Assembly (NCBI GenBank): GCA_030704615.1
Contig: CM060731.1
Location: 43,834,001 to 43,898,000, forward strand
Length of the DNA stretch: 64,000 bases
Source: Takakia lepidozioides
Taxonomy: Eukaryota; Plantae; Bryophyta
Direction: 5' to 3'
Shown: one piece after another, positions 38,785-63,412 of the stretch
Layout of the letters: every line of letters begins with the position of its first letter
Numbering within the stretch: the first letter of the stretch is position 1
The notes under the pieces: generated by a model
What the model was told of the DNA's origin: nothing
Database searches by the model: none
The model's input: the letters and a program-made list of their open reading frames with translations, nothing else
Made by a program: the position numbers and the translations under genes

Positions 38785-40140
38785 ACATAGTAGTTCTTTT
38801 ACAGCTTCCTTCAAACCAGGGCGGAGCTCCGCTCTCCCACCACCAACCGCAACTAAATCCGGTAGCACAACAACAGATTGCGGCTATTACGTCTCTGTGT
38901 TATGACTGCAAATGCAGTCATGGAAGTCATTTACGACTTCCTGACTCTGCAGACGTAAAGCCCTAGTCAGTTGTGACATGGCAGATATGACTCTCTAGGC
39001 TGGCTGTGACGTGGCGCCAGAGCATCTGTGGGGGTAGTCATACACGCTGGCATTACAGAATGACTGAACGGACAGTGTAGTCCATGTCAGCCGCGGTGTA
39101 AGGCAGACACGTGCTAGCTACATAACATGCCACGTGTCAGACTGCGACGCATCCCTGACTGCCAGCTATGACAGCGAACAAGGGAACTAAACGACAGCAC
39201 GTGTCGCGTCGTAGAAGAAACGCGTGGTGCGACATATCAATGCCACGTGTCACTATGGGGGACGGGGCTTCGCAGTCACAGTCACATGTATGTCTTGATG
39301 GGGGGGGGGAAATTGGTATCAACACGTGGCAACATCTGGGGACACCACGTGCCACGATCGTGTGTGCCCACGTGCTGGACTTTTGGGAGCTGCGGTGGAT
39401 TCTTGCCAGTCATACCTACGACTGGCGCAGTACGGTATATTCCATGATCACCCTTTCCATGAGGACGTTGTAGTCCCACGTGGTGCCACGTGCACGATCC
39501 TCTAAACCTCACGTGCTGCTTCGTAGACATACATTTGACTGGACGTTTTGCATATGGAGTCATAAGACCAACTGCGCGGGGACCTTAGGGGGTCACGTGT
39601 CGGAATGTAATATGCTCATACACGTATCATATTGGGTTCGGTACTCATGGTTATGACTCTGGACGGACACGTGGATATGCCACAGAGACAGCCAATAGGG
39701 TGCCACGTGCATATGCCACACAACATCACAATCATGTATACAGCAAGACTTTAGGCACAGAAGTGGCACAGACGTAATTCTGAAAGAGCACAAATAGCAG
39801 CAACATCACCATCCAGCATCACCATTATCAACCACATTCTCCCAGCAGCAACATTACCAACCATAGTGTGTGCAATGGGGACATACAACCTACCACCACA
39901 TTGCTCATTAATGAGACATAAGTTTGCAACAACATGCATGAGGAAATCCAACATGTGGTTGCTATCAAAATTGGACAGTCAATTCAGAGAATATGTCACT
40001 ACTATAAGTTACCGTAGTTGCCAAATCCGGATGAGGCAGAGGTGGAAATCTGGATAGACAAATTGTTATTAGCTCATTGTAGACCTTGTAGACACAATAC
40101 TTTGCACGATCCGTGTTCCATAATTCTCATGCAATCTGCC

Positions 40141-40443
40141 ATGTTTGGGGTGGGATGGCAGTTCGTGGTGGGAGACCATGTCAAGCTCATAGACACTGTT
40201 TCGCGATCAACAACCGGATCTGGACGCATTGCTGGTCTCCAAGGGATGGAGGTGAGTGACGGGTACCCTGTCGTGCCAGAAGGCTATATGGTCATCCACA
40301 TTGATGATGTCCGCATTCCCAATGCCCCTCTACCATATCACAACAAATCCATGAAGCCTCATCACACTGAGTTGGGAGACACTGTAGGTTACATTACTGT
40401 GTGGAGTGACAAACTAGTGAAGACCTTGCAGACAAAGAGATGA
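40141..40443 (+). CDS. Tnp1/En/Spm (Transposase_23-like) domain exon within the CACTA
   Basis: GSGRIAG...VVPEGYMVIHIDDVRIPNAPLPY...TELGDTVGYITVW resembles the Tnp1/EnSpm C-terminal domain pattern. Confidence 0.5.
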   Translation: MFGVGWQFVVGDHVKLIDTVSRSTTGSGRIAGLQGMEVSDGYPVVPEGYMVIHIDDVRIPNAPLPYHNKSMKPHHTELGDTVGYITVWSDKLVKTLQTKR

Positions 40444-40705
40444 GGCAGGTCGGCACGCATTGTGGATTTCATGGGGAAGGGGAGAATAATAGATGCATAC
40501 ACTTACCCCATTCTGCGAATCAGGGATCAGTGGTGTCGGCTTCCTGAAAAGGTGAAGGTGTGCTGCCCTTTGACTTGGGGGGCCTCGTTCGTGGCCAAGC
40601 ACCTACAACCAACCAACAAGCACCAAAAATGTATTTTGGCATACACTGGGAACTCAAATGACAGTAACACAATAAGATGCACCATTCATTGTCAATGCCT
40701 GCAGT

Positions 40706-42001
40706 TCACACTGCGACAGTAATTTGACAAACTCTATCACAAGGTTGATTACTGCCACAACTTAAGCACAAATGAGGTTGGCAATGGCACAAGGGAGTTG
40801 CACAAAAATTCGACCACGGAGTGTACCACACTACAAAGTATGTTACCTGGCGAGGCTGAATGGCTCGAGGGCTGATAGCTTGTTGCCCAAATGTGGGTTG
40901 CCCTTTGAGATATTCTGGAATGCTCGGAGCCTTAGCTGCCCCTTCCAAGAAGGGCCATAAGATGGTCAGAAGAAAATTATCATTGTGCGCCTCTACAGAA
41001 CAACTTCTCCAAGGCAGTGGGAAATTGCGCTGTATGCTGGATTGTTCGACCCCTTGTGCGGGTGTGTCGTCAACAAGAAGAGTCGTTTCAGGATTCCAGT
41101 CACGGTTGCCCCGCCACACTGTAGATAGGTTCTTCAAAAACCGTGGTTTCATGGGCAGGCTCCCATCCATGTCAGTGGACTGCTCACAATATCCCCCATC
41201 CCACTTGAATGCAAGGTAACCGAGCCCATGGAAAAGCCAGTCCACTGTGGGTAGGAAGTTACATGGTTGCATACAAGACCATGCTGCCACTTCAAAGTGT
41301 TCAAAACACTTGTCCAAAAAAGCTTTGCAACCAGGCCTTACAACGACCATCTTGCTACCACATAATTTGTGCTCAAGGCCATTTGGAACCACAAACGCAT
41401 TACCGCTCCCGACATGGACGCACTCACACAGCAAGCCATTAATATCTAGGATGAGCAAATGCTTGCCCTTCTCCACTGTTCTGTGCACGACATTCTCCTT
41501 CATGAATTGGAGGTTGGGAGTGGAAGTGACAACCGTGGGTTGCTGGGTAATATCTGCCAGCGGGGAAACAAGGTCAATGTCCAGGGTTCTCTTAGATGCC
41601 CCCACCGCGACAGCAGCAGGCCGGAGTTCTGCAAGCGCCTCCACTACCGCACAGTGTGACAGAACTGCACGAGGACGCGTAAGTTCCTTGGTAGGGATGT
41701 CCTCCCCTCCACCTGGGCCAACATGCTCCACCTGCACATCATCCTCGAATGCATCAACTGGAGTGACGTTACCTGGTGACATGCCAGGCAAGTCAAACCT
41801 GTCCTCCAGACGTCTCGAGGCTGAAGGGCCAGCGATGCACGAGTTGTTTGCTATGGATGAGCCCACTAAGGCAGGTGAGGAAATGCTGATCCCAAATTTC
41901 TCTGCCATGGCCTTCTGGTACATCATCACATGCGATATTGTAGCCTTCAAATCCATTATATCTTTGTGTTGTGCACCCTGTGCTCTTTCCATATCCTCCA
42001 C
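40706..42001 (-). CDS. FCP1-homology (NIF/HAD phosphatase-like) domain ORF inside the CACTA, probably the last exon of the TnpA-like gene
   Basis: LLILDINGLL...VVRPGCKAFLDKCFEHFEVAAWS...FKWD...KPRFLKNLSTVW...TTLLVDDTP...FP...FGQQAI, domain at ~40873-41470. Confidence 0.8.
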   Translation of the reverse strand: MEDMERAQGAQHKDIMDLKATISHVMMYQKAMAEKFGISISSPALVGSSIANNSCIAGPSASRRLEDRFDLPGMSPGNVTPVDAFEDDVQVEHVGPGGGEDIPTKELTRPRAVLSHCAVVEALAELRPAAVAVGASKRTLDIDLVSPLADITQQPTVVTSTPNLQFMKENVVHRTVEKGKHLLILDINGLLCECVHVGSGNAFVVPNGLEHKLCGSKMVVVRPGCKAFLDKCFEHFEVAAWSCMQPCNFLPTVDWLFHGLGYLAFKWDGGYCEQSTDMDGSLPMKPRFLKNLSTVWRGNRDWNPETTLLVDDTPAQGVEQSSIQRNFPLPWRSCSVEAHNDNFLLTILWPFLEGAAKAPSIPEYLKGQPTFGQQAISPRAIQPRQVTYFVVWYTPWSNFCATPLCHCQPHLCLSCGSNQPCDRVCQITVAV

Positions 42002-43157
42002 TTTGGGAGCAACTGCTGAATACCCAGAGGTCCCCTCCTGCCAGGTCCACGCAAGTCCATGAACAACATGAGAACATCATGCCGTTGGTAGGGAAAATGC
42101 CTAGAACAAAATAATCGACAAAAAATGGGAGAAAGAATGATCTGCTCGAATCTCACCATCCGCTCGCTGGTCAATGTTCTGCTTACTGAACCTTCTTGGA
42201 TTTCATGCAACTTCGGCCTCGCTCCTGTGCCTGCATTGGAAATTGCCCAAGCATGAGTGCAGGCTAGTCTCCTCACCATCAAGGCATGGTTGAAACAATC
42301 AAGTGCAAATTAGCTCTTAATAATGAGTTTCATTCATTTGGGGAATGGCTTAATACAAATTATTGTGCCTCCAGAACTCAGAAAGCAACAATTTCATGGA
42401 GCTTCACAACTCTGCCAATACACATAATCTGAAATCAGAGAATGAGAGCAGCTCTCAGGCAACGACATCAACACAATATGTCTAAGCAGAAACTGGTGAA
42501 AATCACGTCGTCACATAGACCTCGCACTCCCCGAATATAACTTTCAAACGATTCTACTTGCCTTTCTTGATGAACATGAGGGACAACTTACATGAAGTTG
42601 CACCACTATCAATTGGAAGAAATACAGAAATGTAACCAAGGCATAACAAAATTGCAAAACTGGGTCTCTATCTCCTTCAAGAAGTCTGGCAAACTGTATT
42701 ACTGACCACTTGCCAGGACCAAGTAAGAAAGATTACCATTGTACTTGACGATTGCAACCTCGCCCAATTTTACAGATGACTACTACGTAGCACTCACAAA
42801 ATACTCCTTCCACAAAAAACAGTCCACAGTGTAATTCGCTATTGAAGTGACTCTTGGACACACCTCCACCCTTAAAGATGCGCTAGGTAGGGTCTCCCTG
42901 CAATAGAAAAGGCTAGTAGCACTCGGGAAACAAAGCGTAATTCAAGATACCTGCCTCCCCCCTTAAAGAAAAGCCTACAAGCACTTTCTGACAAGGTGAA
43001 TGAACACTTTAGTTCACTCCACAGGCAGCACCCCTTCAAGAAAACCCTGATTGCACTCCACATAATTTGGAGAATTCCTGGCCCAAAGCTTGGTGGCACT
43101 TCGTACTTCCCTCGTAACATGGTGTAAAATGGGGGAAATGGACACCCCATTATACAT

Positions 43158-43838
43158 TGTACTCATAAGACGTTGTTTGCCGTACCCTTGTGGCCATTGA
43201 CCCCGTGCCCAGTTTGAGCAGGAAACAAAGGAACAGAACCTACCTCAATTAGGGGTTGACGTTGGTAGTAAGACTTACCTTCATATAAAGAATTAATCCG
43301 GGTTTTCCAGATATCCTCTAGAAAACCCTTCACACAAGCATCAATCTGCTGGTGTGATTTGCACAATTCCCTTGATTGAATTGAAGAGAGCGTCTCTTTG
43401 GTGAGAGAACCCCAGACAGTGTATCAGAAAATGAATATTGTCTTCAGATTGCCCACACAACGGACAATTGCACTCTCCCTTTCCTCTCTGCTTCTGTTTG
43501 CTATTCAAAGGTAGGGTTCCTGCCCTGAGTTTAAATTTCACTATAGTGCCAAGAGTGGGTAGACCCTTGAGGTCATCCAAGATGTCCACCCCCATGTCAC
43601 TGACTGGAAACAAGTTCAGGGAAGCTCTCTGCCTAACTTCATTTTCATCACACAATCTCATGGCAATAGACATGGCTTCAGACACTACAGCCTCTAAGTC
43701 AGATTTATCCAGCAGGGTCAAGACTTGCGGATCCAGGTCCAGGTCCTTGAGAATCTTTTCTACTCTCTTCTGCCAGGACTTACCCTGTTTGACATTATAA
43801 ACAACAATCAGCCAAGGCAAAGAGGGCAAAAAGACTGG
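43158..43838 (-). mobile_element. 5'-truncated LINE fragment (same small family) in an intron of the CACTA accessory gene
   Basis: KFKLRAGTLPLNSKQKQRGKGECNCPLCGQSEDNIHFLIHC, with the same 3' terminus as 966-1515. Confidence 0.85.
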
Positions 43839-43851
43839 TGTGTGAACTTAC

Positions 43852-44620
43852 AAGCCGAGCCTCAACAGATGCCTTCCCACCACGTCCTGTTTTTGAAGGC
43901 TTCTTGATTGATGAATTTGCAACCTTCATGAGGGCACTTTTTGCGCTGAATCCTGCTATCTGCCAATACGATACCAGCCTGTCCCAATGAGCGTCCTTCA
44001 GATGCGCAGGCCTCCCCTCGCCTGCCTTGTACAGTGCATGGATCTCGTGTCTTTAAGGCAATGCCAAGTGTCTTCCTCATGTGCTCATAGTCAAGACCAC
44101 GTGGCATGTACGCAAATGTAGAGTTTAGAATCATGTATATTTCTTCAATGACAGATTCATCCTGCGCTGCAATATGCATTGACATGTCACACAAACGCCA
44201 CATCTGGCCTTTGAGGGCTGCATGCCAGGTATTGCGTGCTGGTCCAATGGGCTCTCCAGCTTTGTCAACCGGAAGCACTTGAGGGGGGAGTCCATCTTCT
44301 CTCGCGCATCATGGTTTCGGATTGCCTCTGCCCTGGCACGCTGTTCGCCCGCCTCAAAGCATTAGCTCGGTCCTTCTTGGTCATAGGGATGTCTTCCTTT
44401 GCCTCCTCAGGTGGTGGGGCAGCTGGGGGTTGCCATGGGGAATGGGGGGCGGGACGGTATCGCCCACCGTATGGCCCAAAAGGTTCGTATGGTGGACGTG
44501 TAGATGCCGGGTAAGCATATGGGTCTGGGAGGTAAGGGGGAATAGGCGGAGGAGAATGGGCCCACCTGGAGGGGGCTTGTATTGGATGTGCGGGTTGTAA
44601 GGGCCCGCAGCGCCATACTG
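43852..44620 (-). pseudogene. TnpA-like (Ptta/En/Spm-type) accessory gene exon of the CACTA, frameshifted
   Basis: A Pro-rich N-terminus is followed by GEPIGPARNTWHAALKGQMWRLCD...IEEIYMILNSTFAY and ...TGRGGKASVEARL, ending at a GTAAGT donor. Divergent from the transposase. Confidence 0.5.
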
Positions 44621-45004
44621 ATCGGGGGTGGGGTAGGCATGTGGGTAATGTGTGTACGGAGGGTACTGTGGAATAGGTCTCTAGCAAAACTCGTAAACCC
44701 AAAAGACAAGAACTAGGGCAATTCCAGGCTAAACGTATACCTCTAACATTTTTAAAGAAATGCCCTAATGACAAGCCCCTGCAATGCTCTCCTGCGAGAT
44801 AGCGGCCACAACAGTAGGGTGAGCCGCCTCTCAGTATACTCACAGTGGGTGCGAACCAAACAACTCCGCCTCAACCTCTTTGTTGCGAGCAATGCAGGTC
44901 TCCCTTAGCTTCATACGCAGTCAGGGACCGCACGGGGAGGGCCTGACCATGGCAGTCTGACATCAGCTGCAAAATACCCTTGCACACCCCCCTGTGTAAG
45001 TACG

Positions 45005-48000
45005 ATGTACACAACGAGAGCGGGGTTTTGGCTGAGAGCTCAACGACTCCGTGTGCGCAGGAAAGATGAGAAACTGTGGCGACTAGAGGAGGCGCATGCC
45101 ATTGCACAAGGGCACCGCAAATATTGTGCAACTGCAGAACTTGCCATGGAGGGATCCCGCAGTTTCTACCGATGGCCAAAAAACCTAACAAAGTATGGGA
45201 GGGACCCAACCTTCGACAGTGTACAGTCCCGGTACGCCTTGCACGATGTACGCACTCTGACATGCTCGCAGCACGCCCGCGCATGTCCGCATTTTTGGAC
45301 AGTCGTGGAGTGACTGGAGTCCGAACTACGTGTCGTTCTTCCGTTGGATGTATTGGAGTCATGGAGTCGTAGTGATGGAGTCATGTAGTTGGTAGTGCGT
45401 CAGAGTAGTCATGTCCATGACTTCATGACCGCGGATCATGGACATTTCAACTACGTGGTGTTCTTCCATTGGTTGTACTGGAGTCATGTAGTGAGGGTCA
45501 TGACTACATGGTCGTTGTTGACTGCCATGTCGGAAGCCTGGCCGCATTTTGGGCTTTGGTAGTTTGTTGCATGTGTCATGCCTTCAACGCACTGCCCACT
45601 TGGGCATATTTGTTGAGAGCTTTCACTTTGTCGGTATGTGAAGATAGCTGTCTGTATGTGGGGATGTCAATCTATCACAGAGGGTATGTTTGTTTTGTTT
45701 TCGATTCGAACTGTGTTCCTACTTTGCCATATTATATGAGAGTAGTTTTTCATTTGTCTTTGTGTGTGAGCTCCACAAGCTGCTTCAAAATGAAGACTGT
45801 GGCCGACCAATTTCGTCTCCTGATTCGCAAGTGCGGGGGAGACTTGCAGCATTCACCTCTATTGAACTAGTGCAATTCTACGTATTGTGTTTGCTTACAT
45901 GACAGTGTTTAAATGAAATTTCAGAGTCTGGGAGTTTTGAAAAAAGCCTATTCATCGTATCCCAATTTCTGATTTTCATTTGCGTTCACAGGGCTACATT
46001 ACATCCGACTCTGAAGTGGAGGCTGAATGTAGTGTAGAGAGTGTTGCAAACGACGTCAATTTGGAGGGACAAGACGGCAATGGGCTACGGGGCCAGATTG
46101 CCCGTGCTGTGCAAGATGCATTTGAAATATCAGATACCCTCCGGGAGAATCCCACACTGCCCAAATGCCCTTCACTTGGACAATGATGAGGCTGTTGAGA
46201 ATGGCGCAAATCCCTCTGAAATGCCTGATGGGGAAAATATGGGCGGAGAAGAAGCAGGCGCGCCAAATGATCTTCACCATGAAAAACTCATGCGAGAGTC
46301 CCAAATCCCCTTATACGATGGGAGCGTTCACAGCCGATTGACTGCCACATTGATGTTGCTCAATTTTGCGCCACTCACAGATGTACCAACGCATTTGTGG
46401 ATGAGTTATTTTCATTGTTGAGGCTGGAGATTTTGCCCAAACAAAACACCTTGCCCAAATCGCAGTATGAGGCCAAAAATATGATCGCCATGATGGGTCT
46501 AGGATACAAACAGATCCATGCCTGTGAGCGTGGATGTGTATGTTTCGTGGAGACCTGGAAAAGGCTGCAAATTGCCCCAAGTGCCACAGTCCTCGATACA
46601 TGGACGGCCGTGGGAAGGTGCCCAAGAAGGTGCTGCGACACTTTCCTCTCATACCTAGATTGAAACGGATGTTCCGAGTTAAGACGCTGGCAGAGCTCAT
46701 GAAGTGGCACAAACAATCATAGAAGTGCAGATGGCATGGTCCGGCATGCTGCAGACAGTAAGGCTTGGTGCCATATTGACAACACATGGCCGGATTTTGC
46801 TTCAGATCCAAGAAATCTGCGTCTTGGATTGGCACTGGATGGGGTCAATCCTTATGGCACAAAATGTGCGAGTTGGTCCACCTGGCCCATCATGGTGCTC
46901 AATTATAATCTACCTCCATGGTTGGTAACGAAGAATTTTTTTGTCATGTTAACACTCCTCATTCCTGAAAGGAATCTGTGACAAGTGAAAATGTGAATGT
47001 TTACCTGCAACCACTAGTGGAGGAGCTAACGACATTGTGGGTGGAGTTGCAGCCGTGGATGTGGCAGCCATTGAAGGAGAGCGGGCTTTTACCATGCGTG
47101 CAGTCCTCATGTGGTCCATACATGACTTCCCCGCCTATGGCTTGTTATCAGGTCAGGTTCACCAAGGGTACTCTGCTTGTCCAACATGTGGACCTCAAGT
47201 CGATCCCAGATATTCCTGATATTCCAGGGGCATCGACGGTATCTTCCCCACAATCATGCCTATAGAAGATCCAGACTTTTAATGGGCGCGAGACATGAGA
47301 CCTGCTCCACATACAGTGACAGCCACCGAAATCAAGGAGCGTGCACGACATTACAAACAATGGATTGATGATGGTGGGACTGTAGGCGCACAGAACGATC
47401 CCTCAAGCTCCATGGCGTAAAACGATTGTCCATTCTGTTTGACTTGCCTTACTGGGAGGTGCGATTACCACACCTGTGTTTTGGGAACATAACAGTGCAT
47501 TGTTTTTCATTGTGCATGATTGTTTGTTTACTGAACCTGTGCTTTTAACATCATTCATGACTACATTGCAATGTGCCTAATTTGTTAGACCACATGGTGT
47601 AGCATCTTATCATCCGCCACACTTTTGATACCATGCATTGCGAGAAGAACGTGACGGAGAACATAATGAAGACTCTTTTCGGGGAAAAGGACACGATGAA
47701 AGTTCGCCGCGATCTGGAATTGCAGGGCATTCGAAAGCCTCTTTGGTTACGACGCCATCCCACCAGAGTGGATACATTGGTAATGCCTGATGCGCCATAT
47801 GTGCTCACAAAACCAGAGCAGCGGGTGTTCCTGGAGATTATCACGAATCTGAAAGTACCCACTGGCTATGCCTCTGCTTTCAAAAAACATGTGGTCAAAC
47901 AAAAGTTGAGCCAATTGAAGTCACATGATTATCACGTGCTAATGCAACAGATCCTCCCACTTGCTCTACGTGGGTTGATGGCGCCTGGGGTTCGCAATGC

Positions 48001-49282
48001 CATACTAAGAGTGTCTCGTGTGTTTCGCAAGCTTTGTGCAAAATTGATTGATCCCACCGAGCATGAGGAATTGAAGAAGGAGGTGGCAGTGACTCTTTGT
48101 CTTCTGGAGAAAGAGTTCCCACCCTCATTTTTTGATGTTATGACACATTTACTTATCCACTTGGTGGATGAGCTGGATTTGTGTGGACCTGTAGCTTCTC
48201 GGTGGATGTACCCGGTGGAGAGAGCAATGAAGGATTTTAAAGGGTATGTGCAAAACTTGGCAAAGCCTAAGGTCAGTATGGCGGAGAGCTACGTGATTGA
48301 CGAGGCATTGGGATTTTGTACAGAGTACTTGTCTTCTGTTGATGCTACTAGGCGGAGAGTGTGGGATGCAGGAGAGGAGGAATCAGTGTCGGGCTGGGTG
48401 TTGGAAGGAGTTGTCGACCACGCAGGTTGACCGTCGAATTGTTGCAGCTTGTCCACGACTACGTCATTCACAACCATCCCAGTTTGAGCATTATGTTGGG
48501 GTAAGTGGCAAACGTGAGTGTATGTCACAGCTTCTGGTACCTGCTATGCATGGGTATGCTTTGTATAGGTGTGTGTGCAGTAGTTCTTCCATCGGCTGCA
48601 GGGGTTGCACTAGATAAATTGATGTGGTTGTGCGTGTGTTGGCAGGACCTATGAGGTGGAGAAATCCAGGTTGGAGACTGAAAATGCTGCTAACCAGAAC
48701 AGGATCCGTGCTCTCCCTCACTTTGCAGAATGGCTGGTAAAAGCAGTCCGCCAGCATGTGTCAAGTGTTGCCAACCATGCTACTGATTCAGCCTGCAAGG
48801 AATTGTTGGACATGTCCAAACCCCCATCATTAATCGCAACATCATACAAGAGCATGTCGGCTTATGGAAACCACTTCAAGGTTACTTCAGATGGACTCAA
48901 CAGCCCCTTTGTGACATATGACTCGGGGGTCTCTACTGTTTTCCAGCATGACTGTACTTGCATTTCAGGTGAGCAGGTGGTGGAAAGCGTACGGTATGTG
49001 GGTGTCATAAAGGAGATTTTAGAATTGGATTATGGCTCCACACACACCACGGTGCTATTGTGTTCATGGGTGCGTGCACAACATGTGGGCTCTCAGCCTA
49101 TGTCAATGAAGCAGGATGACTCTGGCTTCACATTGGTGAATTTCTCCCACTTGTTGCCTCCACTTGAACAGCCTTTTGTGCTCCCATCACAGGTCGAGCA
49201 AGTTTTTTTCTCTGAGTGTGTGAATGAACCGAGATGGAACGTGTCTATCTGGCAACGTGACATGACATTTATGTCACTATAG
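45005..49282 (+). pseudogene. CACTA TnpD/Tnp2 transposase (transposase-associated, Transposase_21, DUF4218 and DUF4216-like segments), with introns and frameshifts
   Basis: LCNCRTC...TKYGRDP; IHACERGC; PKKVLRHFPLIPRL; FASDPRNLRLGLALDGVNP; STWPIMVLNYNLPPW; DFPAYG; MHCEKNV; LKSHDYH; FPPSFFDVMTHLLIHL; RWMYPVER; YVGVIKEILELDY; PFVLPSQVEQVFF. Confidence 0.93.
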
Positions 49283-51407
49283 ACTTTGGAACGGCGTGCT
49301 GATTTACACATCAGTTTTGCCTTTGGGTACATTGTTGACAAAGTGCATGTGCCTTCCTGTTTACATTACATAATTGCCCCAGTGATTTTGTGGGTCTTAT
49401 ATTGGGCAGGCTCGTGTTTATGGACCATTGAATACCAGTGGAGTGCTTTTAAGCTTGGTCCCTACTTATCATGTTTGCATTTTTCCCCAAAAGAATCCGG
49501 CAATCCGCATAGATGATGCTTTGGCTGGTTGAATGGGTTCTTTGCGTAGATGCATTTTATGGGCAGTTTCTCTCATGCCCCAGCTAACACCATCTGACTC
49601 ACTTGTACAGTCCCCCATCTGTGAATGGCTCGAGCAGGGTGCAGTACATTCAGCACTACACTGCTGGTGCCCTGCAGGTGTTCCATGCCTTGCACCACAT
49701 CATTATTTCCTGATGTCATCCTGCTGTTGTTCTAGCTTGGGGCAGGTCATTGGGGATATGTACATTAGAGAGAAGAACATGAGCTGTTATCTCAGTTGTT
49801 TTATCATACAAGAAGCTTTCTTCATGGGCTCTCCCATTCTTAGAACACCCCCCATGGCAAAGTGGGGATCGAACAGCCCGTATTGCGAAGCTTCTATTCC
49901 AGTACCACACGGCGTGGAGCTCCGGGACGGCCTGCTACAGCGCAGATTGCACAAGGCAATATGTTAGAGTGTCTTGGATTTCATATTTTGTTGGTGTTCT
50001 TGGTCACTGGTCAAAGACTTTTGTTGAGCAATGTTTTGCATCACTGTCATGAGTGAAATCTATGATTTGCATGAATTTGCCTATCCCCTGAATGCATCAT
50101 TTGTTCGTCTGTCATTCCGCAGTATGAGGCTTGTTTTTTATGTTGTCCGCGATCAACAAACACTAAAATGCACGTCGCCATTTGAACGTAACGTCACAAA
50201 CAGATGCGGTTCCAGATCGCCTCTCTAGCATGTTGGCTTCACGTTCCATTCTTCTCCACAAAGCGCAAACGGCCTACTAATCTGCTTCGTGTGCAACCGT
50301 TCCCTTCACTTGCATCCCCCGCACCACAATATCAAAACCACTTAACCAATCATATGTAGACACCTCATAAGTTGTTCCATGTCACAGACTCTCCATGTCA
50401 TCACGACATGTGATGATCTGGCATAATGCATTAGAGTGGCAGTGATGAAGTCATATGTCCGTCTAGCAATATGCACACGTCATTCTAGTATGGGCATGAC
50501 CCTGACTGGTAGTCATATCCGCCATGGCAATATTCCTGGTCAAAGGGTGTTTGACCTGTGTTGCGCAAAGTTCGGAGTCATACAGTCGCATAAATGGCTT
50601 CGTCGTGATCTATGTTATGACTTCAAAAGGCATTTACGACTGCAAATGGCATATCTGCCACAAATTTGTCGTGACTGCGCACCCATGGGAGTCATAAAAG
50701 CCGCAATCTGTTGTAGTGTAGTCATGACTAATATTTAGGGATCTGCCATCTTACCGGTCCTGTAGTCTCATTTTTCTCAATTTTTAGCAATGCCGCTACT
50801 CTAACCCTTACTTTCTTCTAGCTACGGCACCCGCCATGGCGCGAGCTCCAACTCGTCGCGCAGCTACGCAGCTGCCTTGCTGCTCTTCTTCCTTCTACCT
50901 GCTCAGAAAGATCAACCTCTTTTCAAAGCTCCGTTTTAGCTATCTTTCCATAGTTCTCTCCTGTTGTTTTCTTATCCTCTTGTTTTCAATGGCTGTTCAC
51001 AATCGGCTATCCACCCGTCTGCATGCTCAACCCGCGTCCCAGGAGTCCTCTGTGTGCTACGACACCAAGCTACTCAGTTGGGATATCTCCCATCCCCCCT
51101 CTCTGTATCAAGCTTGGAGCCCAGCTTCGATTGATCTCCCTAAGGCGACACATCTTTACCATCGACCAGTTCAGGTTGCCAGCGAGCTCTATAGTGTGTC
51201 CTGGAAGACCTCGGGGCGCCTCACCCTTCAGCACCCAATGACAATCTGTACTCACAACGGGGAGGTTACTACCGCCCCCACGCACAACATATTCATTATC
51301 CCAAGTGGCGATCTTGAAAGTATGAGGGTTCTTTGCCCTTATGGTTCCTCCCACCGATTGCATGTCGGCAGTTTCACAACCTTTATGTTTCACTGCTATC
51401 ACTTTGA

Positions 51408-53021
51408 ATGCGGGGTGACTTCTTTTCATTACGGACTACTCCACCGCTGCTGCCTCCGCTTCAGGACTATCGCAGCCCCCGGAGGCAAGCATACAGACAA
51501 CACTTCAGGGTTACATTGCATGCCCACGCAGCTGAGAGCGCGCTTTTCTTGCACCGAGTGCTACCTACTTTTTGGCTCACGACAGCACCTTGGCAAGCTC
51601 GGAGGCTTCACCCCTATCTCTTGCGCCCTTTTGACCTTCAACCGACGAATCTGACTTCAAAGGCTACCCGCGTGAGGAGTTGGAGCTCGATCACCGTAGC
51701 TTCCCTCACCTCACACCACCTCCAACTAGCTACATGCCGTAATACCAAGGCAACATCCCAACAACAGGTCTTCACTCCTTCTTTGTTATGGGCCCATTAC
51801 GGATGTTTCAGGAGCTCCCCTACTTATAAACGACTCCTAATTACCAAGAACGCTGGAATTGTACCAACTTTCACTCTGAACAATACCCTGGTGGACTTGT
51901 ATGCAAAATGTGGGTGCATCGAGGATGCACAGGGAATGTTTGACATTATGGCTAAACAAGATACGGTGTCGTGGAATGCGAGGCTTGAAGAATCTGCTGC
52001 AGCTGTACCAAATGTCATTCTGCACACTACCCTGGCAGATTTGGACAAGGGCAATGAGGCCCATGGCGACATCTACAGAGCTGGAATTGTACCAACTGTT
52101 ACTCTGAACAATACCCTTGCGGACATGTATGCAAAATGCGGGTGCATCGTGGATGCAAAGGGAGTGTTTGACACTATGGCTGAACGAGATATGGTATCGT
52201 GGAATGTGATGCTTAAAGATTTTGCTGTAGTTGTACCAAATGTCACTCTGCACACTGCCCTGGCAGACCTGGAAATGGGCAACGAGGTCCATGGAGACAT
52301 CTTCAGAGCTGGAATTGTACCAACTGTCATGCTGAATAATACCCTGATGGACATGTATGCAAAATGTGGATGCATCGAGGATGCAAAGGGAATGTTTGAC
52401 TCTATGGCTGAACGTGATTTGGTGTCGTGGAATGTGATGCCTGCAGGTGTTGCTGTAGTTGTACCAAATGTCACTCTACACCCTGCCCTGGCAGATCTGG
52501 GAAAGGGCAAAGAGGTCCATGGCGACATCTTCAGAGCTGAAATTGTACCAACTGTCACTCTGTTGGTGGACATGTATGCAAAATGTGGGTGCATCGAGGA
52601 TGCAAAGGGAGTGTTTGACACTATGGCTGAACGTGATCTGGTGTCGTGGAATGCGGTGCGTGCAGGTGTTGCTGTCACTGTACCAAATGTCACTCTACAC
52701 ACTGCCCTGGCCGATCTGGGAAAGGGCAAAGAGGCCCACGACGACATCTTCAGAGCTGAAATTGTGCCAACTGTCACTCTGAACAATACCCTGGTGGACA
52801 TGTATACAAAATGTGGGTGCATCGAGGATGCTAAGGGAGTGTTTGACACTATGGCTAAACGCGATTTGGTGCCGTGGAATGCGATGCTTGCAGGTGGTGC
52901 TGTAGTTGTTCCAAATGCCACTCTACACACTGCCCTGGCAGATCTGGGAAAGGGCAAAGTGGTCCATGGCGACATCTTCAGAGCTGGTGCGCTAGAAAAT
53001 AGAAGCAATATTATCAAATGA
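51408..53021 (+). CDS. Open 537-aa ORF with five tandem 76-aa PPR-derived units, in the LINE 5' region
   Basis: Units start at 51852, 52080, 52308, 52536 and 52755 (228 bp each, one 219 bp). Consensus [74 protein letters not shown]. No stops. Confidence 0.8.
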   Translation: [537 protein letters not shown]

Positions 53022-53529
53022 TTTGGCTGGCCTGAGCTAACGACCGCCCGGGTGAATTATGGTATCGTGGGTACATTAAGGATTAATGACTCTCTCAATC
53101 GAGAACATCAACTCTCATCAAGTCAACTCAATCAACTTCACAGTCATGACGTCAACTCATGGACGAGACCCATTCTTCATCCAAAAATAGCGCGTGGATG
53201 AGCTAGTGAGGGTGAGATGGATGGATGATGGTGAGGTGCATGAAGCAGTTTGGATGAGGCAGGATACAACGGCCGTTCAACGGCGGCGGCCTGATCCCTC
53301 GTCTCAGGGATCTCTCTCTCTCTCTCTCTTTTCTTTCACTCTCTCATTTTAATTGGTGTCTACAAGACTGAAAGTAAAGACATAGAAAATGGCAACTGAT
53401 GAACAAGTCGCAAGCGAGAATAAAGATCTCAACGGAGATGACAAAATGGGGGAGCAAGTTGTTGGCGGATGATGAAGAAAATGAGGGGTTTATGATAAAT
53501 AATGAGAGGACTCAGTATGTGTACCACTC

Positions 53530-54180
53530 TTCCAGCCGTGGGAAAGGACAAATGTGTCCATGCTGACATAATCAAAGCTGGAATCTCACTTGATATCAGT
53601 CTGAAAACTGCCCTTGCTGATATGTATGCCAGTGCTCACCAGCTCCACCTGGAGGCTCAACCTCTTGTCATTGATTCTCATTATGCTTATGGCCCTCTAA
53701 GCAAAGATCTTCTTGCTGATTTATCCCTGCTTCTGCACCAGAAGCGGCAGGCCAGGTTGAATGGCCATGTCAAAGCTGGAATTGTTGTGGAGACCTATGA
53801 TCAAATGATGGGGGAAGGGGTGCAGCCCAACCACATCACGTGTGTGTGCATTTGCCATGCTTGTGCAAGCTTGGCAGCCCTGGAGAAGCGCAAAGATGTG
53901 CATGTTGACATCATCAAAGTTGGAGTGGTACCAAATGTTGTCTCCAGCCTCAAATTTGCACATAAGCTGCCAGGTATGTACACGTTCCCTGAATCATGTT
54001 GTTATCATCAAAGCTGGCATTATGCAAAATGTCAATCTGAAGACTGCCCTCTCTACCATGTATGCCAAATGCGGGAGCTTGAATGATGCAAGCCATGTGT
54101 TTGATGACACGCTTAAACAAGCTGGGTTCTCATGGAGTACAATGATAGCTGGATATGCTGAAAATGGATGCGGTACAATG
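53530..54180 (+). pseudogene. Further PLS-PPR fragments in the LINE 5' region
   Basis: VHADIIKAGI...TALADMYA; EGVQPNHITCV...ACASLAALEK; TALSTMYAKCGSLNDASHVF...SWSTMIAGYAENG. Confidence 0.75.
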
Positions 54181-56566
54181 GCTTTCTTGAACTCACGTCA
54201 TTGGAGGCCCTTGATAGAATTTCTTACAACTTATGAGCTCGATCACAGGAAGCTGATGGGGCAGCTACTTGATCGTGGTGTTATATTGAGAGATGGCAGG
54301 AACTCAGTTCTACCCATCATGTTCCATGTATGTCCCTCCCCAGGTTCTCATTATGCTTATGGCCTCTTGCTATGCATAACTGTTGCCTATACAATGCAAC
54401 CTCCCCCTCCTCTGTTTTCTGCCCCAGAGACCTATGCCCTGAATGCTGGCAATGAGGCCCTTTTAAATACACATAGCCAGGATTATGAACAGCCAGCCAC
54501 ATTACGCAGCCATACAAGCCCTTACTGGGATATGACTCGACCAGTCTTGTACGAGCACATTCTTGCTAAGGTAGGCTCCTGGCGAAAAGAACCTGGACAG
54601 GTCATGGTCGCATGCCATGCTAGTGCAAAAGACTGTGATATGAGCGGGGTTTGTGTCATCAAAATCTGCCTCCACATTCGAGACACCATCTCCAGCATTT
54701 GTCAAGACCTACCTAAACCCAAGGCTGCAAAAAGGTGGCCCAACTTACTGAAGAAGGAGGCCGGGCCACTGATCGGCCTTTGTCTATGATGAGAGCAAGG
54801 ATTCAAGCAATGAAGCAGTAGCATAAAGATCAAATATGCCACAGATCCGGACTGGGAGAGGTAGTTTGGAGAAGTGGGAGGGTAATTGCCCTGATCACGG
54901 TGCCGGCCATTTATGCCCCTATGTGTTGGATATATCAGCCAACACGTGACTACCTACATGTAACTCTCCATCATGCACCAACACCGCAAGTCAGACCATC
55001 CAGGAAAGTCACCTTACACGCTCTGTGTGCTGCCAACTTTACCACCCACTCCTATTGTCGAATGCCACTGTATGTGCTTGATACTTATAACATGAAATCT
55101 CAAACTCCACCTATGTTCCAGGAGCCTATACCTCCAATGCTGACATTATCCTGTCGACATCTGATACGACAACTATTGTTGTATGCGTCTGTGCAGCCGA
55201 CCACTTCTGCCACCAAGTGTTGCAAATATCCGCCAACAATCACCAATATGCCTACAATCTCCAGCCTGCACCAACACAAGGACATGCATCCAGGGAAGTG
55301 ACCTTAAATGCTCCAGTTGCTCCCTACTATAGATGTCAACTGTTGTTGTTCGTACTTAATACTGGTCCCATGAAATCTCACACTGCACATCTCTATGTCC
55401 TACGAACCTACACCCTCAATGCTGCCATCATCTTGTCAACTACTGGCTCCCTTTCCCTTCGCTTGAGAGAAAGCTACAATACTACCATCTACCCTAATTT
55501 ATGGTGCATTGTAAGGATGTCTGTACTGCAGCCCGCATGTGGATCACAAACCCCCGCCAACAATCAATTTCTGTTGCAAGCTGCTAGCCCCCTTCGACTT
55601 TGCCGATTGGAGTCCCTGCCTACCACCTTGCTCGTGTACTTCCCCGACTTGATGCGCTCCCTCACAGGCGCCAACCTACTGCGAAGCCCTGCGGCTCAAT
55701 TTTGCTGCACCGACCACCTATCAGATCATAGGCTTGTTAGATATTGAGCTACTGTTATCACTAGCTTATGTTGTAATTCCTGAGCACCCCCTCTGCTCAC
55801 ATTTATTCTTTCAATATGCCACAGCAAAGTCTTGGCCTCTCATCGTATCACAACGCTATACCCTTATTGGCTTCACTCACAAATCTCCATCTCTCATCCT
55901 CCACAACTTTAGACTCATCTTGTACTATATTTTTTCCAAATAAGCCCCCAACAAAGCTTCTCCATCTCATCGCAAAACGCCCCCTCAAGTGTCATATATC
56001 TGCCATATCTACACCCTCACATTTTCAGCCCCCTACCTCATCAATTCTTGTGATATCAAATCAATCACACGGTCTCTTCATCACCCCCTCTAGCATCCTA
56101 TTCCTGACAGCCATTTCTCCTCAACCTTCCCACCCTCTCAGCTGCCAAGCATCTACCACAATCCAGATCCACTTACCATCACCCAACCCTGCCACCACTC
56201 CACACTGTACCTCTATCCCACTATCTATATCAAGGCCCGCCGAACTCATTCATCCATGGATGTTGTCCACTTATCCTCTTTCCCCCACTCTAGTTAATTA
56301 TATACTCTCTACCCACCATACACCCATATTAAATTTTTATCCCCATCATGAGAGCTCATGTACAACAAACCTCCTTCATGACCCCTAGGCGAACCCACAC
56401 ACTAACCACAGGCAATACCTTCCCCCCACACACACAAGCAACTAGCTCCACTAGTACCCACTATGCTAACACCAACTCTACCCCCCTCATACACTTTCTC
56501 CACAACTATCCCCCATGCACCCCCACCCCTCACCTCCTCAAAATCACAATTTAACCCACTGCCCAC

Positions 56567-59500
56567 ATGGACGATATCACCAGAAACCCCTTGCAAAAAC
56601 ATTCCTCTCATCACCCACCATCCCACTTTGAGTCCTATCTACTTGCCTATGAAACGCTTACACTACTTCGCTGCGGCGACATCCACCAAAACCCAGGCCC
56701 CTATACCATCACTAACATCATCAACAAGCTTCCAAAGGATCATAAAGACAAATATGAATTATACTTCCAAACAGACACTATCACGCTTGTGCCTGCATAT
56801 CAACACCTTAGTGACCACTTCTCTCCATTTCTCCAACCCCTCCCAATAACCGTAAACCCACGCACCCAATTGCCACCTTTGGGCTCCCTACTTGCGAACA
56901 CCCATCCCTAGTCACTGCCACCCATAAACTTAGCACATACCCCCAACACCTACTACTCTCACTAATCGTTGTCATTTCTCCAATCCCTCAATATGCAATG
57001 ACTACTTTAGAACCCAACCAGACATACACAGTTTGCTACTACACCAATTGCATGAGCTACCCACACTACCTCATAGATACCTAGCACCCCCACACTACCT
57101 ACACAATCTCCACGAATCCCTTGACCTACTACAAGCCAAGCCCGGAGTAGTTCACAAGATTCTCGGCAAACACCTAGCGCACCCAGCTGCTACCATACAC
57201 AAGCTAGATACTCTCGCCAACAAATTCCCATTCCTTTCCAAAAATATTCTCACTACAACCCTCCATGCCAAGACAAGCATCCCTGGATATCAACCCCTTC
57301 CCATGATGCCGCCACCAATCATCACACATTGTTTGCCCCAACACACCAATGACCCACCTCCAACACCCCCTAGATCAACAGTCCCCCACACACCCCCCTC
57401 CCAGCAAGCACACGCACTCAACATACTCACCTGGAATGTAGGGTCACTTGCTACCAGCATTCAAAGCCTTATCCATCTAATGGACTCTACACCTCCGCAT
57501 ATCATTCTATTACAAGAAACTAAACTCAACAAACACGGCCCTAACAGCTCCTACATCAACAATCTCCTTCCAGCCTACTATTTGCTATATGGCAGTTCCT
57601 TCACAGCCGCACAATGCCTACTTAGACGCTCCGCGCCATATCATCCCACTCGAAGTGGCTTTTGGTATCCTTCGCACACATCACTCCCCTAGCACCACGG
57701 TCAAAATACCTGTTGCTCTCTCCTCCGATCACACCTTCAAATCATCAAACTACACCTCCCCGCTATCCTCCCCATTATCCTTATCCACTTGTACATGCCC
57801 TCACATGCCGAAGATCTCCCCCTGATCCCTGCTATCATCACCATCTCTAACACACTCACACAACCCTCCAATCAATCCCAGCACTACATCCTAGCAGGCG
57901 ATTTCAACAAGGACATTGCCCTCATGGGCCACACATACAATGGTGCTCACAAACCTCCATCCCCCGTTGACCATGAATGGGCAAAATTCACTCACTCACA
58001 CCACCTCCGTTATATACCAGCCGATCACCATTACTCTAGACAAGGTGGACTTAACTACTCATCCCTCAGTCTTCTTGATGGTTTCTACTTCAAGACACAA
58101 AATGACATCCCCTCATACCTCAACAGTCATGTACACATTAATAGTTTATGCAACTCATACCATTATCCCGTCTCAGTCACCATCCCCTTTTGATCTATCC
58201 CACCCATACATGTCTACTACGCCACAATCTAGAACGTATCCCCACTTCCCCACAATAACATAATCGCCTTTCTAAAACACTTCCAGCCAACATCCTTACA
58301 CTCAAGACCTCCGATATACCTCCAAAGCAAACCTCGCGCAGTCCCCTATCAAAGCATGGAACGACGCCGAGACCATACTCACAACTAATGACCAAAAGTG
58401 TGATTGCCACTTGTTCTGCCCCCCTTGAAATCCCACAACTGCACGCTCAAAAACAAATGGTGGCTACCTTACCCGTACTCAAAAACGTATATGGACATCA
58501 CATTAACACATACAACGATCAGGCGTGCCCTCGCTATTTATCCCACCATACCCCCCCTTCACCAGGGGAACAAATGGGACATCGGATCACGTATCACTTG
58601 CCTAAATACCTTAAAACGTGTCAAGTACTAATGCCACCACCTGCCATCTTCAAGATATTCCAAAATGGACAGCTGCTCTCCAAAGTTGGCAGAGATGCCA
58701 AAAAAATCGCTTACAATATTACCAACAAAAAGCTGTCGACAATCCAAACATTCGTCTCATCTTTTAACCAATGCTACGCGACCACACCCAAAAAGCTCAC
58801 AAAACCATCTTTAACCCTGCCTCAACCCACCCATTGACTGTCTCAACACAGACATGACACTTGCTAACCAATTCAACGGACATCAACCAAGAAATATGGT
58901 CACAAGCATCCTCATCATACACACAGTTCCAAACAAATCATCCCCGTCTCCACTCTGCCAATTGTATGTGTAAAGCTAAACTATCCGTGGCATGATATAG
59001 ATGGCGTCTCGATTGACAATAGAGGATCCCCCCAGAATCGCATCCTAGACTTATTCACAATTGATCTTTACGAATCATGTCTCAAAAACTATCAAAATCT
59101 AAAGCCTCGGGCCCCGATTTTATACCCAATGCTATACTTTGAGCATTAAACCCTCAAGTTCACTCCTCCTTTTTAAATTCTTTCAACTCTGTTAAAAACT
59201 AAAACGAATCCCACACTCCTGGAAACACAGCCGGACCATTTTACTCTCAAAAAAGGTGATCCTATAGAATCTCAGTATTACAGACCCATAGCACTGGCCA
59301 ACACCATATACAAGCTATTCACCAGTACGTCACCATAAGCTATCAAGATATGGCGCAACACCAATTCTCGTGACTCAAGAAACACATGAAGATGTACTTA
59401 AAGCAAGACATCTATCTTCTATATATCGATAAAAATGCATTTGCTCCCTAGATTACTTGCTATCATGCTTGATCGTGGTACCCCATGCCGATAATAGGAA

Positions 59501-62500
59501 GCAAACACCACTAGGACTGATAGGCGCACCTTGCCTACCTCCCCTTGTGGAACCCATCCGGTCCCCCCTGCCTACTCTTATCCCCTAGACTTCGCTGGCT
59601 TCCAAGCTTGGTCTCCTGCAAGACTCTATCTTGACCAGCTTCTGCATTAAAAAAAATCACCTGGCACCCATATTCCATCAGCCATCCCTATCCTTCGACG
59701 TTCACACAGTCCTCCCAACCTAGCCCAACACACTTCTACCCTTCCACAACTTACTACGAATACACATTAGCGGCTCGCACATCTATCTCCACAACTTAAA
59801 GCTTGCTCTGCTCAACCCCCTTCAACTTAATATCATTTCACTACCAAATGCTGTCCCCTTCCCTATAGCCCATCAAACTTGATAATTATCCAACATGTGT
59901 ACCTACCCACTAGCCCCCCCTCACCCAACTACCACCTCAACATTGGCAGCCATTAATATTAATCTCGCACATCCTCCCCATAAAAAAGAACAGCATCCCC
60001 TTCTTATTTTCGGGCCTTCAACTTACCTTGCATCTAAAACAATCCTGCACTTTCTCACTGAACCACAATACACTCCGCACGCACTACTACTCTGCGCCAA
60101 ATGAATTAGCATATCTGATCTGCTGACTATATCACCCTCATCATCTTAGAACCGCATGGCTTACAAGCCCTCTCTACACACAAATTTTTTATCCCAAACA
60201 AAGGTCCCTCTCACATATTTCAAAAAGACATCCCCACCTCACCCAACTTACGCCCTCACCAAACTATTATTGCCTTAAATTCCTGAGCCACGACCAAACA
60301 TCGCTATTACTCAACTTCGTCCTTCATCCCCCCGACCTATGCTACCATCGCCATCCATCTAAAACCCCTCCCTACAAAAAGAATTATCTCAAGTAACCCT
60401 AACAACACACCGCACCATCATCCCACCACCCTCAAAGGATCCCACACCCCCTAACCACCGCACCATCCCCCCCATCCTCACCACAATACGACGACAATAA
60501 CAATGCTTACATCATTGAAGCTATACTAGGAGTTAAGACCCAAACGTCCACTAATGTCTTTGGAGCCACCTGCATTGATACATACTATCACTGTCAATGG
60601 GCTGGGTACTCTTCCGCAGATAACACATGGCAGATAGAAGACGACCTCTTCGGCCTACATGACGATTGCGACCCTGAACACAATCTTGCCCTCCTCACCA
60701 ACTTCCATAAACAAACCAACACCAACTATCTAACACATATGCACCAACAACACACCACTCCCGCCCAACCTACAGATAACAGATATATACACCAACCACT
60801 CTATGCCCCCAACGTGCACATCTGCATAACTGAATGTAATCCTGACAAAGATGTCAAGCATGATCAACCTCTAATCCACATGGGCCCCCGCCTTTCCAAC
60901 ATTTACGCTCAACACGGCTGCTTCATTGGCCTCATCCCCAATACAAGACTAACATGGCTCTGGGAGAAATACTCTACTACTACCTCATCCCCACAATCGC
61001 TACAACCCCCGAAACAAGACTTTGCTACCGAGTTATATTGGCTGGTTGATCGCTACCTCAAAGACACTCCCCCCAAGAAACCGCGGTCCCTTACTAAATT
61101 GGAAATAGCATGTGCGCACCATACTATACCCCAAGATATTCTCTCCTTATTTATCAACACATTCCAACTTACTCACTCATATTACTCCAACCTACTGACA
61201 TGCCCTATGACATTGCCCACATTCTCTAGCCCGCACCACAGAGAGTGTATCTTTGGAGCCACTGGTACTACCACCCAACACACCTGGGAAGGCCGGGGCC
61301 TTGCCCACCCTCCACCTGGTTCTCCTTCTCACGAAGCTCTTCAATGGGCAAAATTTGCTTCGCACTTCTCTCCTACCACATCTACAATCCTCATCCTCAC
61401 ACAACAAAACACTCCTAATATCTCTCACCCTCTTCTACAACTCCCAGAAGGGGTCAATCTACTCGCCACAATTGACCCAAACCAACTTAAGTATATTCAC
61501 ACCCCTCCTCTTCCCAAATATCTCAAACGGAAAAAACCCACCATAACCCTGATTCTACACATCCAAAACCCTCGGCATACAACCATACCGCCATCTTTCT
61601 TTTCTTAGCTCAAACAATTGCTCACCATCACTCATAAAATAAAGGCCACCATCTATTATCCAATCATCCTCTCCCACACCCATACACCCACCACATTGTC
61701 CCGGATCAAAACCAACAAAGCTTGGAACATTGCGACACCACGCCCTTCCCAGGTCGCGCCAACAACCTCTACCCCCAATCCCTGCAATATATCAACAAAA
61801 CACCATCCTCAAATACCCACTGGCCAATTCACATTACACTGACGGATCCCTCACCAAACCTAATGCATGGTATGGAATCTATCACGCTGGCACCAGTCAA
61901 GGTGTTGCTCTCAGGCTCCCTGGCCCTGCTACCATCCTCCGGGCTGAACTCATGGCCATTTATGATGCCCTCTCTCTACTTGACACCTTCCCCCCCCCCA
62001 CACTACATCTTCACCGACAGCCTTACCTCACTATTCCTCATTCGCAACCACATCTCCCACCCCTCTACCCATCATCATCACCCCGACCGCAACCTCATTA
62101 CCGCTATTGTCCAGAGGGCCATCTCCCTAGGCCACCCAGTCCATATACTCAAAGTCCGTTCGCATACTAGCATCCATGGTAATGAAGAAGCAGACCTACT
62201 CACCCAACTCGGCGCCTCCCAACCCATAGTTGAACCCTCGATCGACCCTATTCACATCGCCCACACCCATCCCTTCTGGTTCATACACCCCATTCCGGAC
62301 CCCCCTGTACCCAGATCAGTCCGAAACCTCCTGACCACTCTGACCAGAGAAGCAAATAAACAAGCGGCAACCTCCATCAGCCATACCAAAGTACACATCC
62401 AAAAATGGACTCAATCCAATGTTCTGCACCATAAACTCTCCAATCATTTCTGGCTAACCAAAGCCACCACTGACGCACAAATCCGACAAACACTCAAATT

Positions 62501-63234
62501 CCGATATGCCCAATACATGGGCCACCAGCGCAAACACATCTTCTTGCCACATCTGTTCCCATCCCCATACTGCCCGTTATGTGCAACCACCCACCAAGCT
62601 CGTGACACTTGGCCACATCTCCTCAGCCAATGTACACACCCAGTTATACATGGTTTGCATATCACGCGTCATAACCAGGCAGTCTGGCACCTCCATAAGC
62701 TCTTTCTAAAACGTGCTGAAACCCGTTGGTTCTTGCTCATGAATGCAGGCACCTACCAGGGACGGCCACCCGATCACACAGTACTACCATGGCTACTACC
62801 ATGCATATGTACCCGATCACCATGCTCGTGCCCCGCTCGACTTTGCCCGGACATACTCCTCGTCCAAGGTCTACCTATCAACACTTTACCCCCCACCACA
62901 CCATCCCCACAACTCACCATCCATTTCATTGAATTCACATTTTGCCATGATCGTTATCCAAACGATTCAATCTTAGAAAAACGTCAAAAATATGCCCCGC
63001 TTATCCTTGCACTCCGAAGGCGTGGCTGGAAAACGGGCCCGTTAACCGTCATCACAGCCGACACTCGAGGTGGCATTCATAACGCCAGTATCATGGACAT
63101 ACACGATAACTTTCAAATTCCCATTCTTCCCATCCACAAATGTTTAAGAAATCCATCTCACGGCACTCCGTTCACTCACAACTATTATCACCAACAAACG
63201 CCAACTGGAATCCGGCACTTCAAATGCACCTTAG
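56567..63234 (+). pseudogene. LINE polyprotein (frameshifted): 2A-like motif, APE, RT, chromodomain, PCIF1-like segment, RNase H, CCHC, RLE
   Basis: LLRCGDIHQNPGP; ILTWNVGSL, ILLQETKL, YMP, LAGDFN; SGPD, WKHS.TILLSKKGD, YRPIALANTIYKLF, LYID; YIIEAIL..WAGYSSADNTW; YTDGS, RAELMAI, FTDSL, KVRSH..IHGNEEAD; CPLC..H....C; RHN, PDI, IEF, KRQKY. Confidence 0.88.
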
Positions 63235-63412
63235 GTCCCCCAGGATACCCCTGGGTACCTAGGGGTACCCTCGCCCCCTCTATTCTTAACGGTCACCTGG
63301 TGTCCCCCTGGACACTTTTTTGTTATAGGGCCCACCTCCGAAAAGGGGCAATAGCCGCAAGGTGAAGTGGCTCTTAGTTACGCCGGCCTCAGCCGGAGTC
63401 TTCTCTCTTCTC

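Follow-up and report, generated by a model that had tools for sequence, protein, structure and literature searches.

Among long interspersed nuclear elements (LINEs), Dualen sits between the type carrying a restriction-like endonuclease (RLE) and the type carrying an apurinic-type endonuclease (APE). Dualen has been described from chlorophytes (PMC9977147, PMC8226300) and cryptophytes (PMC5029228). The literature that we searched, whose scope did not include Repbase or the 2005 Dualen paper, yielded no paper on land-plant Dualens; judged by title, none of the 16 listed papers that name Dualen concerns land plants. Kojima and Fujiwara (2005) reportedly mention a sequence from Arabidopsis data. 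Here we analyze a 64,000-nucleotide stretch of contig CM060731.1 (referred to as the window), in which positions 38785–63412 hold a Dualen/RandI-type element of a land-plant branch with two open reading frames (ORFs), present here as a defective derivative that carries pentatricopeptide repeat (PPR) sequence. Quite probably, this is a single insertion of a non-autonomous member of that branch, mobilized in trans.

As in the chlorophyte Dualen/RandI elements, APE and RLE occur in one element together with reverse transcriptase (RT), RNase H and a CCHC knuckle, there is no fixed target, target-site duplications (TSDs) are variable, and the 3' tail is a simple repeat and not poly(A) (PMC3747384). 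Unlike those elements, the window element has a land-plant host, is defective and has no Josephin domain, and its plant relatives have a separate ORF1 that is not found in the long algal-type proteins. Target duplications of Dualen-4b_cRei have a median of 900 bp (PMC9977147), compared with 9–14 bp in the plant lineage. The cryptophyte Dualens (Dualen-1_GCr, PMC5029228) show the same order of APE, RT, RNase H, CCHC and RLE, and likewise have accessory domains added at the front; these are a SET methyltransferase and a C48 peptidase there, whereas a chromodomain, a PCIF1-like segment and PPR-derived sequence are found in the window. Because the cryptophyte elements have another protease, an N-terminal cysteine protease is an accessory trait. 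L1 and RTE LINEs of plants have APE only, and the RLE of the window element separates it from them; the site-specific RLE clades (R2, Utopia, CRE) have a fixed target and no APE, and the window lineage agrees with them on neither count.

Insertion site, ends and order of the element

The 13-bp TSD of the element, TCCACTACAAACC, is present at 38772–38784 and 63413–63425 and is the longest repeat common to both flanks. When the insert and one TSD copy were removed in silico, the frame FDVDIHYKPGRDNMVADALSRK of an older Gypsy element was restored, and this Gypsy then reads in frame through DIHYKPGRDNMVADALSRK, indicating that the whole of 38785–63412 was inserted into it. A nested CACTA-like element with 30-nt terminal inverted repeats (TIRs) is a later insertion that lies outside the LINE proper. 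Without it, the LINE measures 12,772 bp, in agreement with the earlier note, which had described a 13-bp TSD around some 12.8 kb net of the CACTA. The features of the locus are as follows.

38772..38784, +, left TSD (13 bp), in the HYKP codons of the Ty3/Gypsy RNase H-integrase junction (flank repeat, restored frame)
38785..38865, +, LINE 5' end (motif GAGCTCCGC at 38824–38832)
38866..50718, strand not assigned, nested CACTA-like DNA transposon (TIRs, TAG duplication, DUF4218, DUF4216)
50722..51407, +, LINE 5' region, continued; multi-copy in DNA runs (read depth)
51408..53021, +, 537-codon ORF with five 76-aa PPR-derived units (Pfam, repeat analysis)
53499..54200, +, more pieces of PPR-gene sequence, scrambled (~78% similarity to the PPR-like stretch at 34500–35900)
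56642..56701, +, 2A-like motif ending GDIHQNPGP, with H for the canonical E (comparison with relatives)
57417..58190, +, APE endonuclease with frameshifts; retains N, E, Y, DxN and H, SDH changed to SYH (Pfam, frameshift-aware alignment)
59050..59620, +, reverse transcriptase, partial, with many small deletions and stops and without YADD (alignment to relatives)
60508..60651, +, chromodomain with Y, W and Y at the expected aromatic-cage positions (Pfam E 2.6e-6, above the cut-off; cage read from sequence)
60820..61430, +, PCIF1/CAPAM-like adenine methyltransferase-fold segment, NPPF changed to HPPP and FASP to YYSN (weak structural match)
61830..62210, +, RNase H with D, E, D, H and D; one frameshift near 61980 splits the domain (Pfam, alignment)
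62571..63215, +, CCHC knuckle and restriction-like endonuclease, open but for one late frameshift (motifs, fold)
63323..63412, +, structured 3' end, conserved, made up of a closing stem, short hairpins and a hairpin at the terminus, with a tail of TCTTC type (covariance model)
63413..63425, +, right TSD (flank repeat)

The motif GAGCTCCGC, or a near form of it, occurs at +30 to +42 in the window and in four full-length relatives, exactly in three cases (5 of 5000 in the control); it may be an internal promoter element. These four relatives (10.7–14.9 kb) and one 5'-truncated copy have TSDs of 9–14 bp at unrelated sites, the 9-bp TSD of L002 being the weakest. Since the 5' motif is common to the window and to the TSD-bounded relatives, 38785 can be taken as a true family 5' end, with the PPR segment inside the element; the earlier note had likewise assigned the PPR-repeat ORF to it. 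The six TSDs of the window and its relatives have only a first T in common. Site-specific insertion at the HYKP codons of Gypsy was ruled out, the TSDs of the relatives being unrelated.

At the other end, the relatives share a conserved RNA structure, after which comes (TTC)n or (CTAT)n. In the three helices of this structure, 91% of cells pair across 12 sequences, as against at most 52% when the alignment is slid, and some changes are two-sided; the shuffle test is inflated by the relatedness of the sequences. With the window left out of the covariance model, its best match in the 64 kb was 63323–63404 (E 0.002), 8 nt before the TSD. Folded alone, the 3' end of the window was no better than shuffles, and the structure is therefore supported by the relatives and the model search rather than by the single-sequence fold. 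No Rfam ribozyme or known RNA was matched at the element ends, and no description of a 3'-end structure in Dualens was found in the searchable literature. Judged by sequence comparison, both ends are true family ends. Between them, the element is one unit with its 13-bp TSD and the order 2A-like motif, APE, RT, chromodomain, PCIF1-like segment, RNase H and CCHC-RLE.

Enzymatic core and lineage placement

Frameshift-aware alignment to close relatives spans the core in order from APE to RLE (read-through translations carry X at the breaks). Pfam matched the APE in two pieces (E 1e-4 and 9e-4, both below the cut-off), and most of its catalytic residues are present; the N-terminal APE, the RNase H and the C-terminal CCHC and PD-(D/E)xK RLE proposed in the earlier note were all recovered. 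RNase H (Pfam E 0.008) sits between RT and CCHC-RLE, and both it and the RLE retain their catalytic residues. The C-terminal motifs were located at 62571–62633 (CCHC), 62667 (RHN), 62847 (PD), 62931 (E) and 62979–62993 (KxxKY). A sequence search of the RLE against PDB gave no match, and R2 was found by fold search only: of 48,161 chains compared with the predicted structure of the C-terminal part, the closest was the R2 RLE (Z 9.5, rmsd 3.0–3.2 over 133–135 residues), and Foldseek also ranked it first, though only at E 0.01. The C-terminus is thus not without an RLE match, an outcome that would have spoken against the earlier interpretation. R2, which also provides the best RT match among solved structures, differs in that it has neither APE nor RNase H and is specific to 28S rDNA, whereas elements of the plant lineage insert at unrelated sites.

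Only part of the RT proposed earlier was confirmed. Its N-terminal motifs and LYID are retained, QEGF has been lost by deletion and the surroundings of QGD are scarred; alignment to relatives revealed no YADD in the window. The sequence as assembled accordingly has no intact ORF2 with YADD, the criterion of an autonomous LINE. Region 57500–59500 contains 22 frameshifts, 19 of which are deletions, and 4 stops, compared with 3 frameshifts and 1 stop in 60600–63230 and about 4 changes of frame over 2.6 kb of the host Gypsy, which is older. Losses of 20–40 codons in APE-RT stand beside the SDH to SYH change. Because frameshifts are dense in APE-RT and few in the 3' part and the older Gypsy, the damage did not come from even decay after insertion; it either goes back to a parent that had already decayed or reflects assembly noise. 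The copy reads as a defective element, not an intact giant LINE.

With the RNase H-RLE part as query, 28 proteins were found at 38–47% identity; more distant matches are long proteins, each from a single ORF, that combine RT, PCIF1_WW, RNase H and, in some cases, Josephin. Five loci from an ENA assembly and JGI metagenomes (L001, L002 and L008–L010) are colinear with the window. Several of the JGI samples come from peat or peat moss. APE and RT are encoded in one ORF in P0315, and RT, PCIF1, RNase H and RLE in one ORF in P0361, indicating that the APE-RT and RNase H-RLE halves belong to one element, as the earlier note had it, and not to two. Recent near-intact copies also exist among the relatives (L100, L104, L106 and L098).

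The RTs of the relatives are 50–90% identical within the group and 33–42% identical to those of algal-type Dualens, including Haematococcus P0294 (34–37%, 279 bits in BLASTP). Searched in PDB, on a different scoring, RTs of intact relatives gave 91–104 bits for R2 and 59 bits or no hit for L1. In a tree of the RNase H-RLE part, the window and seven relatives formed one clade (SH-aLRT 99) apart from the algal-type rows; this tree is quick and unrooted, with a long stem branch and composition that differs among rows. No outgroup RTs were found in viral contigs, and rooting by bacterial RTs was discarded, these rows being too short or too long-branched. Lineage placement rests on similarity and architecture. 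The proposal of a Dualen-like lineage in a land plant stands as far as the Dualen-type RT and architecture and the clade beside algal Dualen/RandI carry it; the RT tree, built without L1, RTE or R2 outgroups, did not carry it further. The Josephin profile matched only the algal-type L017, and neither the window nor the plant-lineage loci.

As for the host, the exon at 5253–5789 of a DUF506 gene (5253–6951, − strand) shares 62% identity with Sphagnum, 54% with Ceratopteris and 43–54% with angiosperms; for Physcomitrium the figure is 66%, but the aligned span is shorter. Together with the PLS-type PPR sequence, these identities indicate a seed-free land plant, probably a bryophyte.

Several side observations were made on the relatives. 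A 320-bp palindromic, MITE-like insertion lies between APE and RT of one of them (L001:5866–6183). Two lineage members are arranged tail to tail at L013:3971–11915, and at L100:1280–16781 a full-length copy begins 150 bp after the 3' end of another; these arrangements possibly reflect clustering of insertions. P0151 (1586 aa) is a distant RT-RLE relative with a Methyltransf_9 match and no RNase H match. An 892-aa ORF at L104:3677–6355 has no Pfam match. This ORF resembles the rvt-type cellular reverse transcriptase genes.

The PPR-carrying 5' half and its origin

The five PPR-derived units have a period of 228 bp, are 87% alike and consist of an S motif, a truncated P and a shortened L (Pfam PPR, E 2e-24); most of the P motif is missing. 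Their frame is open over all five units, and their pooled pN/pS of 0.74 is weak evidence of constraint. Neither the 272-codon ORF from 50836 (50836–51651) nor that at 55091–55744 had a Pfam or Atlas match. At 34367–36365, directly upstream of the Gypsy pol, lies a broken PPR gene with internal duplications that is ~78% alike to the PPR pieces of the LINE. In DNA runs under the same species label, the non-PPR parts of 50.8–56.5 kb are multi-copy and have similar depths, which fall off at 53161–53357, and PPR-like sequence is very abundant in this genome. In place of PPR, the relatives carry a weakly RRM-like ORF1, several hundred codons long, and none has PPR at that position; PPR sequence therefore does not characterize the wider lineage. 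The 5' part of the window element shows no remnant of ORF1 or Josephin. The source of its PPR part is land-plant PLS-type editing-factor genes, whose sequence is scrambled here and out of frame with ORF2. In Haematococcus lacustris, Dualen/RandI ORF2 has a 2A-like peptide, Josephin and a PPR domain (bioRxiv 10.64898/2026.06.17.732966). The window element resembles it in the 2A-like motif before APE and the PPR-like sequence upstream, but its PLS-derived, rearranged PPR part is probably the product of a separate capture. In the same half of the LINE, 54902–55440 is a diverged tandem duplication (~294-bp period, 67%), and one 20-mer occurs at both 53675 and 54345; outside the LINE, 35988–36365 resembles a DYW remnant.

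If the element moved as other LINEs do, its full-length RNA would start at the internal promoter near +30 to +40, and ORF2 protein would bind the structured 3' end. A nick would then let the TCTTC tail prime target-primed reverse transcription on TC microhomology, a second nick 9–14 nt away (about 13 nt here) would produce the TSD, and RNase H would remove the RNA. In the sub-family represented here, ORF1 would have been replaced by scrambled PPR-gene sequence, and APE-RT would have decayed while both end signals were kept. Since these signals persist despite the decay, the element was most likely mobilized in trans by proteins from an intact Dualen. The CACTA was inserted later. Several points weigh against this account: the contigs matching the 5' region are short, and none of them connects PPR with APE, the RT tree placed the partial RT of the window without strong support, and the damage is biased toward deletions, as long-read errors are.

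The last point would be explained if the APE-RT damage were unpolished long-read noise and the real copy intact and autonomous, with PPR serving as an N-terminal RNA-binding module instead of ORF1. The excess of deletions, the extra single C bases that contigs carry at several places in 55.2–56.4 kb, the open PPR frame with its pN/pS and the PPR-fused ORF2s reported in Haematococcus all fit this explanation. However, losses of 20–40 codons and the SDH to SYH change are atypical of read errors, the 3' 2.6 kb of the LINE shows hardly any damage, and the units are without most of the P motif, which makes an intact copy unlikely. The PPR part could also never have been mobile with the LINE, if the TSD brackets a composite in which a PPR pseudogene or repeat was inserted later between the 5' end and ORF2 of a 5'-truncated Dualen. 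The mosaic 5' region, the far lower depth of 53161–53357 than of its neighbours, the absence of PPR at that place in any relative and the abundance of PPR-like sequence, also next door at 34.4–36 kb, would agree with this. Yet no TSD or terminal repeats were found around the PPR segment, the non-PPR parts on either side are multi-copy at similar depth, and ORF1 is absent and not just interrupted; we consider such a composite improbable. Finally, the separate ORF1 of the relatives, without Josephin, together with the long stem branch, might suggest an independent lineage with RLE and APE, or an L1 or RTE element that separately gained an RLE, rather than Dualen proper. This is very improbable, because the matches of RT, PCIF1-like segment, RNase H and RLE are all to Dualen-type proteins, which have these parts in the same order, and L1 RT scores far lower or not at all. 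We thus favor mobilization in trans of a PPR-carrying Dualen derivative.

A broader reading, which we offer only tentatively, is that seed-free land plants hold an undescribed and widespread two-ORF Dualen branch, and that a sub-family in a PPR-rich genome swapped ORF1 for PPR sequence, moved as a 12.8-kb RNA and so copies and shuffles PPR motifs, possibly as its own RNA-binding module. If true, it would supply a concrete path by which PPR genes could have spread through retroposition, as has long been proposed. With near-intact copies, defined ends and short TSDs, the land-plant branch is material for testing how two nucleases share nicks. The PPR capture would allow a connection of LINE mobility with the expansion of PPR genes to be tested; the window copy is dead, and its PPR units look degenerate.

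Accessory modules and neighbouring elements

At the place of the 2A-like motif, the relatives read DIESNPGP, DIEPNPGP or DIQPNPGP. The canonical DxExNPGP form is present in L010 and L013, and the window, read from sequence, has DIHQNPGP. The chromodomain resembles the Chp1 and HP1 types, and the relatives have a homologous but weaker version at the corresponding position. The domain may steer insertion to heterochromatin, which fits the Gypsy target in this one case.

The PCIF1-like segment matched the CAPAM methyltransferase structure weakly, and of the 36 best Dualen hits, 25 have a PCIF1-like domain in their annotation. The FASP and NPPF motifs of PCIF1/CAPAM methyltransferases are not found in the window; the plant lineage reads HP for NP, and algal-type P0154 keeps FASP and NPEY. 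Catalysis is doubtful given this HP, and the segment is probably a non-catalytic nucleic-acid binder. DIRS1 retrotransposons contain PCIF1-clade methyltransferase domains that are likely inactive (PMC4738411); as in the window, the domain lies inside a retroelement polyprotein and its catalytic residues are altered, but DIRS1 elements use a tyrosine recombinase. No paper naming a PCIF1-like domain in Dualen LINEs was found in the searchable literature. The earlier note had suggested that the combination of modules might be new. All of the modules are present, but the PCIF1-like domain is common across Dualens, 2A and PPR are known in Haematococcus and a chromodomain-like remnant exists in the relatives, which narrows that suggestion.

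Other features of the window were recorded in passing. Within the CACTA, an ORF at 40706–42001 (− strand) encodes a NIF/FCP1-type phosphatase domain (Pfam E 9e-12) with the motif DINGL and not DxDxT, possibly as cargo. Three copies of another LINE-like 3' end with a zf-RVT-like knuckle lie at 948–1560, 20927–21547 and 43140–43829 (− strand), the last inside the CACTA, and one of the three has a perfect 47-nt inverted repeat at 1172–1297. An array of 48-bp units at 25344–25672, each containing a near-palindrome (GACCGCC..TGGCGGTC), lies near a 1.1-kb element with 119-nt inverted arms at 28665–29743.

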